Assembly: GCF_000143415.4 (NCBI RefSeq)
Contig: NW_003314302.1
Location: 80,065-144,064, forward strand
DNA length: 64,000 nucleotides
Origin: Selaginella moellendorffii
Lineage: Eukaryota > Plantae > Lycopodiophyta
Direction of reading: 5' to 3'
The notes beneath the pieces were generated by a model that worked only from the letters and a program-made list of their open reading frames with translations, made no database searches and was not told the origin of the DNA. The position numbers were made by a program, and so were the translations under genes. Positions 5,801 through 53,424 of the stretch are shown in pieces (position 1 is the stretch's first letter; each line of letters starts with the position of its first letter).

Positions 5801-8800
5801 ATGAACAAGGGTTTCACTTGGGATGGATTGGACGGCGGCGGTGCTGTGGCCGTGGTGCAATCGCCCTGGGAATTCTCCGGCTACGCAAAGGCTAGCGAGC
5901 AGGAGCATCGCGAGCGCAACACCACGTCCATCGATCACAAGATCAAGCAGCGCCTCAATGCGGGTAAGCAGCTTGCTAGGAATCAGGACAGCGACGAGGC
6001 AGAGGAGGAACTTCTGGAACGCGCATGGGCCAAAGGCAGAAGCGTTGCTCGGAAGAGAAATAGAGACATTGCCAGTGAGGGGAATATTAGCGATGAAAGC
6101 GGTGTAGAGGAGGATGAAGGTGCTCAAGATTCTGATGAAGAGGAGGGAGATGATCTAGACGAGGAAATTGACGAAGATGATATAGAGCAGGATGATGAAG
6201 AAGAGGATGTGGACCAGGACGGTGAAGAGGAAAATGACGATGAGCAGCGGGAAGAAGATCGCGGACAAGACTCTACTGACGAAGATGAGAAAGAACAACT
6301 TGATCACAGTCAGCGAAAGAAAAGTCTCGATTCGAAAAAAGAGAAGGTATGGGAAAGAGGAAAACCATGCTAACAAGATTTTTATTTTTATTTTTATTTT
6401 GTTCTTAATTTGTTTCGTTACTTTTTTTTCTTTGTAGCCTGCAAAAGCCGGGAATACCAACAAAAAGCCGCAGTTTTTTTCTTCTAACCATGGTGCTTCC
6501 TTCAACGCATCGTCTTTCATAGAACTCAACGTCTCACGGCCTCTTTTACGGGCTTGCGACGCTCTTGGCTACCGCCAGCCCACTCCTATTCAGGTAAAAT
6601 GCTGTGATTCACTTTTCATTTTTTCCGTTTTTGATTTTCTTGTTTAGGCAGCTTGCATCCCACTAGCTCTTGCCGGAAGAGACATTTGCGGCAGTGCTGT
6701 GACTGGTTCGGGGAAGGTTTGAAGATGAAGTTGTAATCTATTGTTGTAATCTTACACGTTATCTGCAGACGGCGGCATTTGCTTTGCCTATCCTGGAAAG
6801 GCTTCTGTTTAGACCCCGACGTATACCGGCTATACGGGTTCTTATCATCACTCCAACGAGGGAGCTGGCAGTACAGTACGAGTTGTAGCTACGCATTTGT
6901 CTTTTAACAAACTCTTTCTGTACAGGCTCCATAGCATGATTGAAAAATTGGCACAGTTCACAGATATTAGATGCTCTCTAGTCGTAGGTGGTCTTTCAAG
7001 CAAGGTATGAAAGATTGTTTTTATAAGCTTTGCATTCTGCAATGGTTTTGTAGGTACAAGAAGTAGCTCTTCGAACACATCCAGACATTGTAGTTGCCAC
7101 CCCGGGTCGTATGATTGATCATTTGCGAAATACACAATCCGTTGGCCTCGAAGAACTTGCAATTTTGGTACTGGACGAAGCTGATCGTTTGCTAGAACTC
7201 GGTTTTCGAGAAGAAATACACGAGCTGGTAGAGTTTCATTTACATAGTGTGTTTTGCATCTGATTGCGTGGACTATGCATAGGTGAAACTATGTCCTTCC
7301 AGACGACAGACAATGCTCTTTTCGGCTACGATGACGGACGAAGTATCTGAATTGATCAAGCTCTCACTGAAAAGTCCAGTCAGGCTGTCAGCCGATCCGT
7401 CAACTGAGCGTCCTTCGACGCTCACCGAAGAGTGCGTCCATTAAGTTTGGAAGGAATCTATCTTGACTGTTGTGTTTTTTGCGCAGAGTGATCAGAATCC
7501 GGGCTGGGCATGAAGGAGATAAAGAGGCTATAGTACTTTCCCTGTGCTCACGGTCACTTAAGTCGAAAACAATCATTTTCAGGTTCTTAGTGTTCTATCC
7601 AATGTAAAGTCTTAACCTTTTCTGTTTTTTCAGTGGCACGAAGGTGGAGGCTCATCGCCTCAAAATACTGTTTGGTCTGTCGGGTTTAAAATCAGCTGAG
7701 CTCCATGGGAATCTAACACAAGCTCAACGGCTAGAGGTCTGTGTTTCGTTACGAGCTTTTTATATGACTTGGGGAACTTTTATGCCAGGCATTAGAAGCA
7801 TTTAGGAAGCAGGAGGTAGACTTTTTGATTGCTACGGATGTGGCTGCTCGTGTAAGTATTACATGGCTTTCACTATGTGCAACGAGCTTAAGTTTGTTTT
7901 CAGGGACTCGACATTATAGGCGTTGAATCGGTGATAAACTTAGAGTGTCCCAAGGAAATCAAAACGTAAGCACATCTCTCTGTTTCTATTTGTTATTGAA
8001 ATCCACGTAGTTATGTTCATCGAGTAGGACGAACTGCTCGAGCTGGGAGACATGGCCGTTCAGTCACTTTGATGACTGAACAAGACCGTCTGCTTTTGAA
8101 GGCTGTGGTATGTTGATATGAAGTATACATGTTCACCTTATGAACGTATTGTCTGTCCCTTCAGGCTAAAAGAGCTGGATCCAAACTCCAGAAGCGGGTT
8201 GTCGCTGCTACATCCATTGCATCGTGGCGTGAGCGCATTGAAAAGATGGAAGAAGATCTAGTTCAGATACTTCAACAAGAAAGGTTTGTTTGTGTGGATC
8301 TGAACCTGACTGACTTTTTTGGCTTCAGGGAAGAGAAGTTTTTGAGGAAAGCGGAGATGGAAGCTAACAAGGTGGTGCACTAGGGACTTGTAACTCTTAC
8401 CTTGTGTGTCTTTCATTTATCAGGCACAGAACATGATGGACTACGAGGCAGAAATATTTGCGCGGCCCAAAAAGACGTGGTTTCAGTCTCAACAAGACAA
8501 AACACGCATTGCCAAGGTATCTCCGGCATCGTATGTTACTGAACCATTATAACAATCTGCTCTAACAGGAAGCCAAGGGGCCAGCGCTGAAAAAGAAGGC
8601 TATTAGTGTTGACGAAGGCGAGGAGCTTCAAAAGAAAGAGAAGCGGAAAGCCGAAACAGAGGTAACATACGCGTGGCTATTCTTTCGAGCGTGCCATCTC
8701 ATGTGTTATCTTGACAGAAAGCCTTACCACGTAAGAAGCGCCGGCGCTTAGAAGCCGCCAGAGAGACGGCAGAGGAAGGCGCTGATGAAGACGAAAACCA

Positions 8801-45041: not shown

Positions 45042-48000
45042 CTAAGCCGCGGCATGGAGCTTGACGAGCGAGGCGTAAGCTCCTCCCTCGACGTGCACCA
45101 AGTCCGAGTGCTTCCCTTTCTCGACGATCGATCCATTCTTCACCACCGCGATCATGTCCGCATTGACGATCGTCGTGAGCCTGTGCGCGACGACGATGGT
45201 TGTTCTGTCCACCATGATCCGGTCGAGCGCCGCCTGGACAACGTGCTCCGACTCGGCATCGAGAGCGCTGGTGGCTTCGTCCAGCAGCAAGATCTTGGGC
45301 TGCTTGATGATAGCCCTGGCGATGGCGATCCGCTGCTTCTGTCCACCCGAGAGTTGGATTCCTCGCTCGCCAACCTGTGTGTTGTAGCCGTCTGGGAGGC
45401 TCGTGATGAACTCGTGAGCGTTGGAGGCCACCGCAGCGTTCACTACCTCCTCGTCGGTCACAGTGCCGTCCTTTCCATACGAGATGTTTGAGCGGATGGT
45501 TCCGGTGAAGAGAATCGGCTCTTGGCTGACAAGACCGATTTGTTGGCGAAGCCATCGTAGCTGGAGCTTTCGGATGTCGACGCCGTCGACCAAGATGTGG
45601 CCTCCATCGGGATCGTAGAATCGCTCTAGGAGATAAATCACTGTTGATTTCCCACAGCCACTTTCTCCGACTAGAGCCAATGTCTGAGGCAAGAAACTCG
45701 AAGTAAGAAAACAAAAAAAAGAGAGAGGAAAACACTACCTTCCCTGCTCGAACGGAGAAGCTCAGGTCGTGGAAAATCGGTACGTGAGACCTGGTAGGAT
45801 ACCGGAAGCTAACGTGCCGAAAGTCAATATGGCCTTTGAGATCCTCTAACTCCCTTCCTGAAGGGTCTGCTGCGTCGATCTTGGACTTCTTATCGATGGT
45901 AGCGAAGATCGAAGCGACGGAAGCTTTCACCTTTGAAAGATCTGGAGCTAGTCCCAGTGTCTGGGAGACACTAAGAGCAGTGAAGATGATAGCAAAGAAC
46001 ACCTGCCAGTGGAAAGAATATCATGAGCACCAAGAAGAAAACGAAAAGATGAAAACTTTCAAGGACCTTAAAAACGTTCTTAAATTCTGTCTTTCCCTGG
46101 CGGACGAGGCGGGCACCATACCAGAAGATGAGAGCTTGCGAACCGAACTGCACGAGAGTGGAGATGGCAAGACCAGCACCACTGATATATCCAATGCGAA
46201 CAGTATTGGCGAGAGGCTTCTTGCACGATTGCTTGTACAGTTCCAGCATCTTCTTCTCCGCACAAAACGATGCAACGGTGCGAATGTTGCTCACTGCGCT
46301 CGTTGCAATTCGGCTCGCTTCTTGGTACGTGGTCTAAAAGAAAACGCTCACAGATTAAACAAGATAGAAGCAGGAAAATGTCTACCTTGGCGTCAGCGCT
46401 AAAGCCCGTCATCAACCTGACTTGGAGAAGGCCGACAATGCTCAGAACAGGCACCATTCCCAGGATGAGAAGAGCTAGCTGCCAGTCTGCAGTGAATGCA
46501 ATTACAAGCCCCGCAACAACGGTTGATCCATTTTGCACGGCCAAGGACAAAGAGTCTCCTACCATTCCTCGAACACTAGCAGCATCCGACGAAAGCCGTG
46601 CACCGATGGCACCACTGATCAACGCAAAAGTTAAGCTGGATTGGAGACTTAAAGATGAAATGTACCTTGAGTTCTCCGGTGTATCAAACCACGAGACTTC
46701 CTGTCGGATGATATTTGAAAAAGTTATTTGCCTGATACGATTAACCAGCCTGCTACCCGCTATTGAAAATGAGAATAAGTTAGAAGGACAAACGACGATG
46801 CTGCCAGCAGCCATCACGACGAACATCAGCGCCCAGAAGTTTGAGTCGGTTTGGAGTTTGTGTGTGTCGAGCTCGAAGAACGTGGCCAGCATACTCGATA
46901 GTAACAGACTGTAGGCTGGAAAAATTATTCCGTGAGCGACTGCGGCCACTGATCCGAAAATAAGTATCGGAAGTTCTGGCCTGTTTAGAGCTGCAACTCG
47001 AAATATGGAGACATCCTTGGGCTCCGCATCCCTGCCCGCTTCAACGTCCTCGCTCGTCTCAGAGCGAAAGCAAAATAAGAAACGCTTTCGTCTGGGCTCG
47101 AGCTCCACAAACTCCATCTCGGGGGCGGCCCCGCCCGATCTCCTGATCGAGAATGACGTGCGGCTTTTTCTACTTCCAAAAGACCATCGTCCCGACCACC
47201 GTCCCGAAGAATTTTTGCTGCCGCTTCTACTCAGAGCCCGTTCATTTGGAGTTGCTACTTGATCGGGATCGACTGCTGGAGCACTTTCTTCGTGCACCTC
47301 TTGAAGTCGGATAAGTTGAGAGTATGCACCGTCGGGATTTTTAAGCAGCTCAACATGTGTACCTGGAAAAGATAGTCATCTAAGACACTGGCGCAGAAGA
47401 CTCGGGATACGTACCTGACTCGATAATGGCTCCATCTTGTACCACAGATATGAGAGACGCATTCTTTACCGTAGAGAGACGATGAGCAACTACAACTGTT
47501 GTGCGGTCGACCATGATCCGGTCAAGAGCTTCTTGAACTACGTGCTCGGATTCAGCATCCAAGGCGCTCGTTGCTTCATCAAGTAGTAAAACACGAGGAT
47601 TCTTTATAATAGCTCTAGCAATAGCGATGCGTTGTTTCTGTCCTCCAGATAACTGCGTTCCCTGCTCTCCAACTTGTGTGTCGAAGCCCTGTGAGAATTA
47701 CTAGAGTTACTCAGGAAAAAAAACGATTTATCAAAACTTACTTCTGGCATCTTGTTGATGAATTTCGAAGCATTAGAGAGCTGGGCCGCAAGTAATATCT
47801 CTTCGTTCGTTGCACCATCTTTTCCATAAGCGATATTTGTTCTTATAGATGCACCGAATAGAACAGGCTCCTGGCTCACAAGCCCAATCTGACGTCTCAG
47901 CCACTGAATTTGTAGCGCTCTCACGTCGTAACCATCGAGAAGAATTTGACCTCCGCTTGGATCATAAAACCTCTCCAGCAAGCTTATAACAGTAGACTTT

Positions 48001-49505
48001 CCACTTCCACTTTCCCCCACCAAAGCAGCCGTTGTTCCAGCAGGTACCTTAAGGCAAAACTTTTTGAATATCTGAACCTCTGGCCTGGCTGGATAAGCAA
48101 AATCTACGTCTTGAAACTCGATATCTCCTTTGAGTGTTCCGGGCGTAATCCCACTCGTATCGAAAGAGTCAATCTGTGGTGTCCGGTTGATAACCTGAAA
48201 CATTTTATATGCAGCAGCTCGACCGGCGGCAAACGCCCCGATACAAGGTGAAGCCTGACCCAAAGACCTGCACAAAAGGAATAAAAAGTTAACGCCAAAG
48301 CTTGAAAGCATATCAAACACTTACATTGCTCCTAGAAGAACGACAATGATTATATTCAGAACTGTACCCCCGCTATACCCCTCATTGATAATTAGCCTTG
48401 AGCCATACCATAACGCCAGAGCATAGCTGTTGAAGAACGTGAACAGAGCAAATCCCATCCCCAATCCAGAGACTAGACCCTGAAAAATGGTGGCCTTATA
48501 TGCATCTTTCAAGGCACTGTTGTAGTCCTCCACAGCCTTAATCTCTCCTGTGAAAGATGCAACCTGATAGAAGCTTCAGATTGTTAGGAGAAATGTGATT
48601 ACAGTGCAAAAAAATCCAAACCATACCGTTCTGATGCCACTGACAACTTGTTCTACTATATTTCCGGCCCTAGCGTACGCAACCTGACCCCTTCCAGCCA
48701 TTTTCGAAACAAGTATAGCGAGTGTAGCTCCTGCAGCAACCAGCAGGGGCAAAGTCGACATCATCACGAGTGTAAGTTTCCATCCCTTGATAAAGGCCAG
48801 AGCAAATCCACCGACGAACGTTGTTACAAACCGTATGAACCTTCCTACCTGCGCAAGATAAAAACAATGAGCAACTTCCAAAAGAATGAAAAAGATCCAA
48901 ACCTTCTCTCCAATGGCATCTTGGATCAAAACAGTGTCCCCCGACATACGCTCGATCACCTCCCCGGTATTCGTTTCTTTATCAAAAAACGAAACATCTT
49001 GACGTAAAGTTGCTTGCAGATAGAGACTCCTGATGCGAGTGGCTTGCCTTTCACCGGTGCAAATCCAGAAAGCAACCTCTGTATGGATATAAAAAACAGT
49101 GAGACCTCTTCAGAGGAAACAATCCATCCATACCACAAAATGATAAAACTGCTGCGCCAGCGCCAAGATAGAGGAATCTCACGGCGACCTGTTCGTCATA
49201 GTCAGCAAAAAGAAATCAAACGAACAAGAAAAAACAGATGAATCCCATACCTGAGAGACAGCATCGAAGAGCTTCCCCGGGTCGCCAAAATTGTTTCCAA
49301 ACGCATTCGTGACTTGGCCCAGGATGAGAGTCATGAAGGGCATCGCGAGACCATTTCCAATCGCTCCCACGGTTCCCAGAAACATGAGAAGGTAGTCCAG
49401 CCTATCGGCAAATGTGAAGAGCTTGTAGAATGGTACCAATTGCTTGGAGGCATCGTCGTGGTGCTCACTCTGTCCGCCTCTAGCTGTGGCGTCCGGCCCA
49501 TTCAT
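45042..49505 (-). CDS. Full-size ABCB (P-glycoprotein/MDR) transporter, multi-exon
   Basis: [11 protein letters not shown] start; two TMD-NBD halves with [33 protein letters not shown]. Confidence 0.95.
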
Positions 49506-49875
49506 CCCTGATCGCCCCAGAAACCACGAACCCAAGCCCGAATTTCAATCGCCCATGGCAAGCCTCCGGGAGTGATCAGAAAGCTGCCACAACAATCTCT
49601 CGGGAGCGTAGTTGCGCTCCACCTATTAGTCGTCGCGCATTGCAGATAGCGACAGTATACCAGCATATGTCCACAGAGATCTATGACCCCACAAACAGTT
49701 CCATCCGGCGGTCCCGTGCTACCCCACACTCGAAACTCTTGTGCACTGCCCATGATCATCGCTGCTGGCTGGAACTCGTGGCGCGGCCGATGGATTGCCG
49801 GAGATCGAAGAGCCCCAAACCCTAATCCAATGCCATGTCACTGGATCCCTCTCCTTCCAAATCTCTCTTTCGAGG

Positions 49876-50346
49876 ATGACCGGAGCTTCCCGACAAACCC
49901 TAAATGCGTTCTTGATTCCCTTGCCTGGCGATGGCAGGCGTGGACGCCGGATCTATATCGAGTACCATGGAGCAAGAAAGAGGAGAAAGAAGAGCTCTAG
50001 AGGACGATCCAGGGTGAAAGTACGAAGGAAGCGAGTGATCTGGAAGGGAATGAAGCGCAAGAGGAGGAAGAGGAAGAGAATCCCTAAAATCCCTATGCTG
50101 ATCCTGGCGACGCTCCTGGAATCCAAGCGCGGCATCAGCAGCGCCGCGATCCTCCACCGAATCAAGCGCAAGTATGGCCCCAATCTCCCCAAGAAATTCC
50201 GGCGATCGCTGGCCAGGCAGCTGCGATCGCTCGCCCGGAGCGGCAAGCTCAAGCGCGTCCACGGCATGTTTGCGCTCACCAGCGCGCTCATCACCAGATC
50301 CCGACACGTGGCAAGATCTCGGCAGAGGGCGGGAGCGCGCAATTGA
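49876..50346 (+). CDS. Arg/Lys-rich protein with a linker histone H1/H5 winged-helix domain (protamine-like candidate)
   Basis: MLILATLLESKRGISSAAILHRIKRKYGPNLPKKFRRSLARQLRSLARSGKLKRVHGMFAL matches the plant GH1 pattern; basic N-terminal arm; start ATG 49876 or 50050. Confidence 0.72.
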   Translation: MTGASRQTLNAFLIPLPGDGRRGRRIYIEYHGARKRRKKSSRGRSRVKVRRKRVIWKGMKRKRRKRKRIPKIPMLILATLLESKRGISSAAILHRIKRKYGPNLPKKFRRSLARQLRSLARSGKLKRVHGMFALTSALITRSRHVARSRQRAGARN

Positions 50347-50812
50347 ATTCTAGGGTTAGGGCTCTTGGATCTAAACGCCATGATCGCCTAGATTCTTCTG
50401 CGAAGAAACACTCCATCTAATTTATCCGAAATAAAAATCCAAGGGAGTTGAATTGGATCACACGACGCGCCAAAAGAGTCAAAAAGAGAAGATGATCGCC
50501 ACTTCGTATCACGGACACGCACACGCTTTTTTAGGGCGGCACGTTGCGCGGGAGAATTCAAATAATTTTTGGGGACCTCACCGTACACATTGGGCCATAG
50601 CATACGGTCTCTGCGACGCTATAGAGCTGTCTCTTTTTGTGTGTGCTCGTAGCTAGGGCTCTTCCTTCCCTGCGCGGCTCGCTCACTGACGCCTTGTCTG
50701 TGATCGCGGCGTGTTCGCTTGCTCAGGGAGGATGGATTTGCGGAAGAATCTTTGCTAGAACACTGGCTGTGCTCGCTTTGATCGTCTCGTTGCGCCTGGC
50801 GTGTAGCAATCA

Positions 50813-51946
50813 ATGAGGCGGCTAAGGCTGGCTTTGCAGCGATTGCGCGCTTTCCGGCTAACAAGGAAGTGTTTCTCGCTCGGTTATCTCAAATCTAGGT
50901 ACAGGGCTAGGAGGGATTCCACCAATTCCAGGAGCTCGCCGCCTAGCAAGCCGCTCTCCATGGCGAAATACGAGAAATCGCGACCGGCATTCATCGGCAA
51001 CAAGCAGCATTGCGGCAAATCGGCGGGGCTGGATCAGCTCCTCCTCCTGGCTTGCAATCCCTGCGCGGTTAGCACCGCCGGGATGGTCGTCGACAGCTAC
51101 AAGTTCCAAATCCAGGGCAAGAAGAAGATCTCGGCCAAGAGCGCCAAGAACAAGGCCGAGAGCGACGAAATTTGGGAGAAAGAGAAGTCCTGGAACATCG
51201 TCACGCAGGTCGGTGACGATTTCGTCACCAAGAAGGTGATCTTGAAGAAGAAGAGCAAGAAGAAGCTCGCGAGGGAGGAGCCGGCTCCAGTGATGAGTGA
51301 TCAGGCCGACTCGGGATCTTGCTCGTCCTCGCGATACCGCCTTAGCACCTCCTCCTCGGCTGCCGACGATCAGAATCACTACTCGTGGGACAAGGAGCTC
51401 TCCTTTGCCAGCGGCGACGATAGATGCCTCGACGAGGATCGCATCAGCTCCGAGTTCCTGGTGGATCGCTTGGAGGCCACTTCCAAGGATGTCTTCATTG
51501 CCCCTCCGGTGGCTTCTGGTGGCCATTTTCTCGATGATTCCTTCTTCTCCCTCGATCACTACATCAGATCTGTCCAGAGCGCCGGTGACAAGCACTTCCC
51601 ATCGCCCGATTGCTCGTCAAAGATCGGCGAGCTGGAGCTGGAGGAGAAGGAGCAGCCAAAGAAGATGGTTTCGTCTTCCAATTGCGGCAGTTGCGATTGC
51701 GGTGCTCTAGCTCACGAGAAGATCCCAGCGGAGAAGAAAGTGGGAGGGGTGGCGGTGGCCAAGTTCTCGGTGGATCCATACCGAGACTACAAGGACTCGA
51801 TGCTGGAGATGAGCGCCGCGAATGGATTGGAGAAGATGAGCGAATTCCGGGAGCTTCTCCAGTGCTATCTCTCGCTCAACCCGCCGGAGTTCCATGCGAC
51901 GATCATGGAGGTGTTCACGGAGCTCTTCTGGCATAGGCTGGTTTGA
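50813..51946 (+). CDS. OVATE family protein (OFP), intronless
   Basis: C-terminal VAVAKFSVDPYRDYKDSMLEM...ELLQCYLSLNPPEFH..IMEVFTEL. Confidence 0.9.
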   Translation: MRRLRLALQRLRAFRLTRKCFSLGYLKSRYRARRDSTNSRSSPPSKPLSMAKYEKSRPAFIGNKQHCGKSAGLDQLLLLACNPCAVSTAGMVVDSYKFQIQGKKKISAKSAKNKAESDEIWEKEKSWNIVTQVGDDFVTKKVILKKKSKKKLAREEPAPVMSDQADSGSCSSSRYRLSTSSSAADDQNHYSWDKELSFASGDDRCLDEDRISSEFLVDRLEATSKDVFIAPPVASGGHFLDDSFFSLDHYIRSVQSAGDKHFPSPDCSSKIGELELEEKEQPKKMVSSSNCGSCDCGALAHEKIPAEKKVGGVAVAKFSVDPYRDYKDSMLEMSAANGLEKMSEFRELLQCYLSLNPPEFHATIMEVFTELFWHRLV

Positions 51947-53424
51947 CGCTTGCTCTATGATCTCGATCGATCGTCTTCGTGGGATATCAAATTCTACTTC
52001 CCGAAGATCAAGGTATGTGTGCAAGAGATCCAGGAAGGATCGCTCATGAATTCACGCAGCTAACAGACAACAGCAGGAGAGATCCATTAAATGGATCATT
52101 GATGAAGAAAGTCAGCACTTCACCAGCATCAATCAAGCAGTGGTTCCTCAGTAACTTCTGAACTGAACTGAAGAACCAGTGGTAAAAGTTCTGGCAATAC
52201 TTGCAAGTTACAACAACCCAGCAGCAGTAAAAAGAAGGATAAAATAGAGAAGAGGCTCCTTCCAAGTTCCATCCAGCCATTGTCTGCTCTCAAGTATATG
52301 TATGATTTCTTTCTCTTGTTTTTTCTTGCTCTCACTTGGATTGGTTGACTCTCCTCTAGTGCAATTGGCACCACAGGATGATTCAGAATTCAGGCCAGCA
52401 CTGACAAAAGGCTGCTCCCACTTTGACTCCAAACCTGTTTTTCTGAATTTGCTGCTTGTTGTGTAGTTGTTGGTGTTGGTCTATTTCATTTCAGAGAGGG
52501 TACCTGGAGAGAGTTTTTTCCATCACTTTTTAAACAAGAAAGCTGCTGTTCTTGTTGAGAGTGTGGCTTTTTTCTTTAAGAAAAATTTATATAAGCTCCA
52601 GTTGATGCTTGAACATATTAAACATTTTCTGCTGTCCTGCGAGGTTGAAGTGTTCTCGATCCTCGTGCAATTCGGAGCGTAACAAACATGCTTCCATGCA
52701 AAACCTTGTCAATGTCAAACATGAGACGATAGCATAAACTTGATGGGAGAGATTAATCAACAATCTCATATGGTTTAATTTGCATGCGCAATAAACGAGA
52801 CATTGTTTCTTCTCTAGATAAATTTCGCACATTCGGGGTTTATGGATGATCGATCGTCTTGTGTTAGTTAGACAACTAACAACACTAACTGGCAAGCAAG
52901 AATAAAGGCCAGATTTAAAGCTGGGCATGATTGCTCTTGTGGGTGTCCACTGTCAGTCCACTAATAACTCTACTGTGGTACTACCAGATCAGCTACACAA
53001 GGGAGTGAGCGTAGCGCGAAAGCAATCTCTTGGATTTTGATGGATCATAGCGAAGGCGCGCCAAGAAAGGAATTTAAATTTTCGAGTGTGAATGGAGGGA
53101 ACAAAACTGTAGCATCAAGCAAGCGAAGCAAGAGCAACGAGTGAGCGTGGGTCTTGCCTTCCAGAAAATGGAAAGAAAGCGGACTACTTGAATGAAAGAG
53201 TGGTGGGCATTTTCATTTTCCAGTGGCAGAAAAGTGTAAGCAAGTGATACCCATCAACTTCTTGGCTCCATTCAAAAAACTCCGCATTTTTTTTGGAATA
53301 CATCCATCAAGCCTGTGATCTTGACTCCATTTATGTCAATTTTTTTGTTTTCTTTTGTACAGCGAAAAGTTTTGCATAGCGCGTTTGCTTACACATCTTT
53401 CTCACGCGGATCTCTTTGCTTTCA

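Follow-up and report, generated by a model that had tools for sequence, protein, structure and literature searches.

The Locus and Its Setting

What lies between an ABCB gene and an OVATE-family gene in the lycophyte Selaginella moellendorffii? The window that we analyzed (a stretch of 64,000 nucleotides of contig NW_003314302.1, from whose first letter all positions below are counted) holds between these two an open reading frame (ORF) of 156 codons plus a stop (49876..50346, plus strand), intact in both haplotypes and with its frame unbroken back to a TTG at 49795. The first coding exon of the ABCB gene occupies 49250..49511 on the minus strand, with splice joints that read CT..AC on the strand shown and GT..AG on the minus strand; its ATG stands at 49511 on that strand, so the two lie head-to-head, just as a preliminary description of this DNA had said. 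The ABCB introns are 54–63 nt long, and the product called on the other haplotype is a protein of 1281 aa with the Pfam domains ABC_membrane and ABC_tran. On the far side, the OVATE-family gene (50813..51946, plus strand; Pfam Ovate, 70.7 bits) is the downstream neighbor, and it also served as our plus-strand control for read direction; its product falls in a protein cluster in which the members with names come from S. moellendorffii.

The frame between them has no gene model. On the other haplotype (scaffold GL377600.1), nothing is called between ABCB and OVATE, and the product of the ORF is missing from a collection of 5.8 billion proteins. The GH1 gene described here is thus unannotated in both haplotypes; the preliminary description had remarked that it would be easy to miss, and it has been missed twice. 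Its stretch of DNA is unique within the window (a repeat or transposable element origin was discarded on that ground), and tblastn found no further paralogs inside these 64 kb. A possible polyadenylation signal, AATAAA, lies at 50430..50435 on the plus strand, 84 nt past the stop codon, as a sequence motif only.

The ORF has telobox or telomere-like motifs, three in all, on either side of it. Two copies of AAACCCTAA begin at 49817 and 49895 (49817..49903, plus strand) in the upstream region that the ABCB and GH1 genes share, the second of them inside the upstream extension of the ORF, and past the stop codon, at about 50351, stands a telomere-like TAGGGTTAGGG. Teloboxes are elements typical of many housekeeping promoters, and the TRB proteins that bind them themselves carry a GH1 domain.

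A Short, Basic Protein with the Predicted Fold of Histone H1

The claim that an ORF for a GH1 winged helix occupies 49876–50346 stands. Pfam Linker_histone (PF00538) matches residues 81–130 of the translation at 28.5–28.7 bits (E 1.6–1.8e-6), with the profile aligned at positions 15–64 of its 74 only; this profile search had been proposed as a check in the preliminary description, and its 28.5 bits compare with a gathering score of 22.4 bits. Residues 69–156 alone give an identical score. The residue strings quoted in the preliminary description are all present in the translation, and Linker_histone is the sole Pfam match: neither an AT-hook (RGRP) nor a Myb/SANT domain was found there by Pfam or by sequence.

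The structural model points the same way. For a 98-aa version of the protein (from Met59, see below), AlphaFold2 with a 125-row alignment gave helices at residues 14–24, 31–45, and 50–64 and a hairpin at 67–76, with pLDDT values of 83–92; the alignment behind this good model was made up of H1s, and a model from the single sequence was poor (pLDDT 58.6, the hairpin missing). The model superimposes on the H1 globular domains of chromatosome structures with an rmsd of 1.3–1.6 Å (5nl0_Z, 1.3 Å over 75 columns and TM 0.82 by target; 7xvl_o, TM 0.78), and it is by TM score and rmsd to H1 domains, not by Foldseek E-value, that we judged the fold. Foldseek against the PDB returned no matches at E <= 0.001, its E-values being weak for so small a domain, and a PDB sequence search with the ORF found no H1 at E <= 1, the top match being an ETS winged helix at E 0.15. 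Together with the Pfam match and the likeness to H1 structures, the model predicts that the ORF encodes an H1-type winged helix of three helices and a beta-hairpin wing, occupying residues 69–135 (50080..50280, plus strand).

It is a very basic one. Over its 67–68 positions, the GH1 region counts 17 basic residues against 1 that is acidic, and Lys and Arg make up 63% of residues 31–68 of the translation, just before it. Helix 1 is atypical: it falls two residues short of its H1 counterpart, it is very hydrophobic, and the Pfam profile does not reach it. After the domain comes a tail of just 21 aa (50281..50343, plus strand), predicted to be disordered in the model of the 98-aa version (pLDDT < 50), with 6 Arg (29%), no Lys, and two RSR motifs. 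A short tail in place of the long Lys/Ala/Pro tail of H1 is what the preliminary description had seen, and we see it, too.

That description had also said that positions where Lys is typical are often Arg, and the numbers bear it out. The fraction R/(K+R) over the GH1 block is 0.53 at this locus; among 122 canonical plant H1s, the median is 0.15 and no value exceeds 0.33, and the canonical H1 of S. moellendorffii itself stands at 0.18. Where canonical H1 has FKK, QLKK, and KVK, this locus has FRR, QLRS, and RVH; the canonical wing KVKxSFKL has become RVHGMFAL, with two conserved lysines gone (one to His and one to Ala), and in helix 2, an acidic EE has become KR. The Lys-to-Arg shift is real, and it lies outside the range of the 122 plant H1s.

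A Sister Locus and an Old Duplication

Does the ORF have relatives? A word-indexed search of 5.8 billion proteins with the 156-aa translation found nothing at E <= 0.01, because the ORF and its closest relative share no 5-residue word. An exhaustive phmmer search with residues 69–156 against 1.84 billion representatives found that relative: there were five matches at E <= 0.001, all of them GH1 proteins. The best was SELMODRAFT_424901 (E 1.8e-10, 43–46% identity over GH1) with its haplotype twin SELMODRAFT_423943, and the others were canonical plant H1s or H1 fragments, the S. moellendorffii histone H1 included. When we searched with a profile built from a mixed alignment, canonical plant H1s were all that came back, without any additional Arg-rich protein. 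No ortholog in any other species turned up.

The paralog (UniRef D8SRD2 and D8SNA8, “H15 domain-containing protein,” for SELMODRAFT_424901 and SELMODRAFT_423943) is likewise intronless, short, and shifted toward Arg (R/(K+R) 0.55 over the GH1 block), and it has a basic head before the motif R(V/I)PK. It differs in its tail and in its surroundings: roughly 55 residues there, made up of RS repeats and runs of Arg, compared with 21 aa and a shorter helix 1 here, and lipoyl synthase and helicase genes as neighbors there, compared with ABCB and OVATE here. Read without splicing, the paralog ORF has 148 aa in one haplotype sequence (L001) and 143 aa in the other (L002), composed of a basic RS head, the GH1 domain, and the tail. 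Its public model, of 112 aa, splices from a GT at 6290 to an AG at 6530, which removes the in-frame RS/poly-Arg tail (L001:6290–6447, L002:6290–6432). Between haplotypes, the 447-nt paralog ORF differs by 1 substitution and one in-frame 15-nt indel, whereas its flanks differ by 13 substitutions per 1001 nt and 20 per 1153 nt (1.3–1.7 per 100 nt; Poisson p ~0.01 for the ORF). Because the ORF is conserved in this way, the RS/poly-Arg tail looks as if it were coding. Literature searches on the identifiers SELMODRAFT_424901 and SELMODRAFT_423943 found no paper.

In a tree of 125 sequences over just 70 GH1 columns (a tree with long branches, built without Marchantia PRM, GH1-HMGA, and TRB), the ORF pairs with its paralog in a clade (SH-aLRT 99) on a stem of ~2–2.8 changes per column from 120 canonical plant H1s. 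The two have derived states in common: KRG for ERTG, a KYG, and RV.G.FA for KVKxSFK. The preliminary description had proposed a phylogeny with bryophyte and fern H1 variants and MpPRM and had held that a grouping with canonical H1 would speak against it; our tree sets the ORF apart from the canonical plant H1s, with the Selaginella paralog as its only companion. Judged by these residues and by its position in the tree, this locus belongs with SELMODRAFT_424901/423943 to an Arg-rich mini-H1 lineage of Selaginella, so far known only from S. moellendorffii. The divergence of the pair (dS 1.12, dN 0.56 over 68 codons) makes the duplication an old one.

Could all of this be an accident of composition, an ORF that arose by chance in promoter sequence rich in GA and in GC and that matches the domain spuriously? 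Such a region yields runs of Lys and Arg in one frame of three, and long ORFs (135–142 aa, one of them spanning 49953–50381) also cross the GH1 stretch on the opposite strand. These two overlapping minus-strand ORFs, however, match no Pfam family, whereas the plus-strand ORF scores above the curated cut-off, its five matches in 1.84 billion proteins were GH1 proteins in five cases out of five (Pfam and phmmer having both been run with composition correction), and it joins its paralog with a support of 99. We regard a chance ORF as highly improbable.

Where Does the Protein Begin?

The ORF as reported may be longer than the protein. Met59 (ATG at 50050) corresponds in position to Met1 of the paralog, and the RIPK found here aligns to RVPK there. 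The paralog, too, has a GA-rich leader before its ATG, and an in-frame stop stands 9 nt upstream of that ATG. At our locus, the in-frame upstream extension (49876..50049, plus strand) consists of 32 nonbasic residues followed by the “basic N-arm,” a GA-rich stretch that reads as Lys/Arg in one frame of three. Three out-of-frame ATGs, at 49904, 49931, and 49967, fall between 49876 and 50050, and the last of them has an ideal context (accATGg), two bases out of the ORF frame. GC3 is 0.79 in the core from Met59 on, 0.60 in the upstream part, and 0.76 in the OVATE coding sequence; we discarded GC3 as evidence of strand, since the third codon positions are common to the minus-strand ORF at 49953–50381.

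A comparison of haplotypes (this scaffold against scaffold GL377600.1 of GCA_000143415.2) treats the two parts of the frame very differently. The upstream part, 49876–50049, has 4 substitutions in 174 nt (2.30 per 100 nt), all of them nonsynonymous (F12C, K39E, V49L, and R50Q), whereas the core, 50050–50346, has 1 in 297 nt (0.34 per 100 nt), synonymous at L80, together with one in-frame 3-nt insertion that adds an Arg. All four amino acid substitutions between the haplotypes therefore fall upstream of Met59. Around them, we count 5 substitutions in the 364 nt of the ABCB leader and promoter region (49512–49875, 1.37 per 100 nt), 6 in the 466 nt of intergenic sequence after the stop (50347–50812, 1.29 per 100 nt), 11 in the 1134 nt of the OVATE coding sequence (50813–51946, 0.97 per 100 nt), and 171 in the whole aligned 13 kb (12,988 nt, 1.32 per 100 nt). 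The single change in the core compares with 3.9 expected (Poisson p ~0.10), a deficit that is not significant alone.

On these grounds, the constrained unit is most likely a protein of 98 aa (99 in the other haplotype) that would run from the ATG at 50050 to the stop (50050..50346, plus strand): a basic head of 10 residues, the GH1 domain, and the 21-aa tail. At most, the protein would have 156 aa. The preliminary description had made much of a very basic N-terminal arm. That sequence is there, and its frame is open, but it lies upstream of Met59 and carries no sign of constraint at the protein level (K39E and R50Q being cases in point); it is probably, for the most part, an unconstrained leader, either not coding or not constrained.

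RNA over the ORF Comes from the Other Strand

Is the gene transcribed? We compared the 5001 nt at 47800–52800 with two contig runs (X1 and X5) and two stranded raw-read RNA runs (X16 and X17), sampling ~9 million reads from each stranded library, the tissues of which are unspecified. The neighbors gave us the direction: the ABCB gene, on the minus strand, had only first_mate_on+ reads at a depth of 5–54, and the OVATE gene, on the plus strand, had almost only first_mate_on- reads at a depth of 35–84. Over the ORF (49804–50304), the depth was 3–4 in X16 and 0–1 in X17, and the reads were first_mate_on+, which is to say minus-strand RNA; this minus-strand coverage, which over 49512–50360 has a depth of 3–5 in X16, ends between 50305 and 50471. 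Sense RNA over the ORF was essentially absent from X16 and X17 (one partial read, or a coverage of 0.25 in one bin only, no more than noise).

The contigs tell us what the minus-strand RNA is. In X1, five spliced junctions between ABCB exons lead into one block without a break, 49249–50360, and X5 (49303–50363) reaches from the interior of ABCB exon 1 to that same start of the leader. Antisense RNA thus covers the whole ORF (49512..50360, minus strand; seen in X1, X5, X16, and X17) as the long 5′ leader, of ~850 nt, of a minor form of the ABCB transcript. The RNA that crosses the ORF in public runs is ABCB leader, not GH1 gene, and we discarded the contigs X1–X5 as proof of GH1 expression, X1 being joined to ABCB exons and the stranded reads being minus. 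The long ABCB form starts near 50360, beside TAGGGTTAGGG; the main ABCB start is at ~49640–49800, where the depth falls.

The preliminary description had held that a lack of transcription would count against its reading, and in two stranded libraries of unspecified tissue, this is what we found: only antisense RNA. Because those tissues are unspecified, the silence is not decisive, and it neither refutes nor supports an expression limited to sperm. Silence in vegetative tissue is also what the sperm hypothesis predicts.

Some smaller observations from the same 5001 nt may be recorded here. Past the OVATE stop (51946), a minority of reads has a small GT..AG intron at 52010–52075 on the plus strand, with alternative acceptors at 52058 and 52075. 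At 48264–48323 on the minus strand, three X17 reads have a splice site that is off by one base at a 57-nt ABCB intron (a skip of 58, one extra C), which probably reflects noise in splicing or a difference between alleles. In X16 and X17, the RNA is heterozygous (~30–60% of reads) at the positions where this scaffold differs from GL377600.1; the plants that were sequenced must therefore have both haplotypes and express ABCB and OVATE from both alleles.

Is the Gene Alive?

A silent, unannotated ORF invites a simple suspicion: that this is a recently silenced, decaying pseudogene of an Arg-rich mini-H1, the frame of which is open only for lack of time and the sole RNA of which is the ABCB leader. 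Much that we have described would fit. The stranded reads over the ORF are antisense, no gene model exists, the poly-Arg/RS tail of the sister is missing, helix 1 is degenerate, and wing lysines have been lost; the ATG with the best context, at 49967, misses the frame by two bases, which is what one would expect after a 5′ frameshift, and the N-terminal part differs between haplotypes by 2.3 substitutions per 100 nt, every one of them nonsynonymous.

Against this stand the age of the duplication and the state of the core. The frame has been kept in both haplotypes, the sole indel is one of 3 nt, the single core substitution is synonymous, and the GC3 of the core still matches that of coding sequence. 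We simulated neutral decay of the 98-codon core with an indel rate taken from the haplotypes (32 gaps per 166 mismatches). With substitutions alone, the probability that the frame stays open is 0.06 at d = 0.56; with indels at the haplotype rate, it is <0.01 already at d = 0.1 and ~0 over the divergence of the paralogs. An old duplicate with its frame still open must therefore have been under selection over most of its history, and with a dS of ~1.1, any silencing would have to fall in roughly the last tenth or less of the time since duplication. The sequence thus argues for long-term selection on this copy. We find a recent pseudogene less likely than a living gene, though we take it seriously.

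What we have, then, is probably a real lineage-specific mini-H1 gene. Stated in full, our reading is that this locus, one of two dispersed mini-H1 loci in Selaginella, holds a coding sequence, free of introns and so far unannotated, for a very basic protein of the linker histone fold with a shift toward Arg, and to this we assign a probability of roughly one-half. Of the two loci, this one is the weaker.

What Might a Tail-Less, Arginine-Rich H1 Do?

The preliminary description saw here a candidate protamine-like protein that would condense the chromatin of flagellated sperm. Part of this idea holds up well: the fold is derived from H1, the shift to Arg is there, and the paralog carries a tail of protamine type. 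Part of it does not: this locus has no such tail, and its N-terminal arm is probably not coding or not constrained. Set beside what makes a protein protamine-like, the locus has the H1 winged helix and the raised Arg, and the extended basic tail rich in Arg and Ser is found only in the sister.

Canonical H1 requires a long basic C-terminal domain for condensation. Since that domain is missing, the protein would be a compact H1-like binder, not a protamine precursor, and for such a protein, it is unlikely that it would condense chromatin alone or yield a protamine by cleavage. Its winged helix may bind DNA or the nucleosome, as GH1 domains do, with extra Arg and Lys taking the place of acidic and neutral surface residues, and it may be expressed in a cell type that is rarely sampled. 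We put male gametes first among the candidates for one reason only, the protamine-type RS/poly-Arg tail of the sister locus. If active in sperm, the protein would be a compact companion to its poly-Arg sister; otherwise, it may compete with H1. A sperm role for this locus would be plausible.

Known systems beyond the paralog allow a comparison. One is canonical plant H1 itself (S. moellendorffii SELMODRAFT_419956), with which the ORF has the GH1 fold in common at 36–38% identity over the domain, but the Lys/Ala/Pro-rich C-terminal domain is missing here, conserved wing lysines have been replaced, and the stem is very long. H1-derived protamine-like proteins are established in animals. The PL-I sperm nuclear basic proteins, like our ORF, have a winged-helix H1 core and raised Arg, but animal PL proteins are long and end in extended basic tails; because the ORF groups with its Selaginella paralog among plant H1s, its origin is independent of theirs. 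A language-model search for look-alikes, the results of which are leads only, gave as the closest match a cluster of H15-domain proteins most frequent in molluscs (0.86), with a “protamine-like” cluster from arthropods in eighth place (0.80).

Among land plants, H1-derived protamines are established in Marchantia polymorpha, for which D’Ippolito et al. (2019, J Biol Chem 294:16364) reportedly described them together with male germ-specific H1 histones. Compared by description only, the Marchantia protamines resemble our ORF in being H1-related, Arg-rich, and from a land plant with flagellated sperm. In passages of two papers that cite the Marchantia work (PMC10858212 and PMC13251019), these protamines are presented as cut from H1 precursors, whereas this locus has no tail to cut. 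Our literature searches for sperm nuclear basic proteins of lycophytes found nothing, and a search upstream of this locus and of the paralog for DUO1-type MYB sites (RRCSGTT), a test of low power, found none.

The other use to which a working gene could be put lies outside sperm. A tail-less GH1 protein might occupy the H1 site, on nucleosomes or on DNA, without condensing chromatin, competing with H1 or modulating it under stress or at a particular stage. Plants do use GH1 outside classical H1, in the GH1-HMGA and GH1-Myb (TRB) proteins, and plant GH1-HMGA proteins are reported to antagonize H1; the tail of 21 aa in place of a long basic C-terminal domain and the teloboxes in the upstream region would both suit such a role. 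Yet the ORF is set apart from GH1-HMGA and TRB by its domain content, with neither an AT-hook nor a Myb/SANT domain, its nearest relative has a protamine-type tail rather than an HMGA or Myb partner, and neither library showed sense RNA. We find a non-sperm competitor of H1 improbable.

Implications

Small intronless basic genes escape public gene models, and the RNA coverage over an ORF of this kind can come wholly from the opposite strand. Evidence of “expression” from unstranded reads would have misled us here.

To our knowledge, Marchantia is essentially the only flagellate land plant for which we have sequences of sperm chromatin proteins, and no such protein has been described for a vascular plant. 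What would it mean if Selaginella had its own? We can imagine a two-locus family of H1-derived, Arg-shifted proteins that packages spermatozoid chromatin, the tail-less member seating itself on nucleosomal or linker DNA and the poly-Arg sister doing the condensing, with the locus described here silent in the sporophyte, perhaps by way of the antisense ABCB leader. Among vascular plants, such a protamine-like system would be the first, arrived at independently of animals and of liverworts. We offer the scheme as a speculative one and think it unlikely to hold. If true, an H1 lineage specific to Selaginella would be the third independent run along the path from H1 to protamine, and it would have repeated the Lys-to-Arg shift that animals made.
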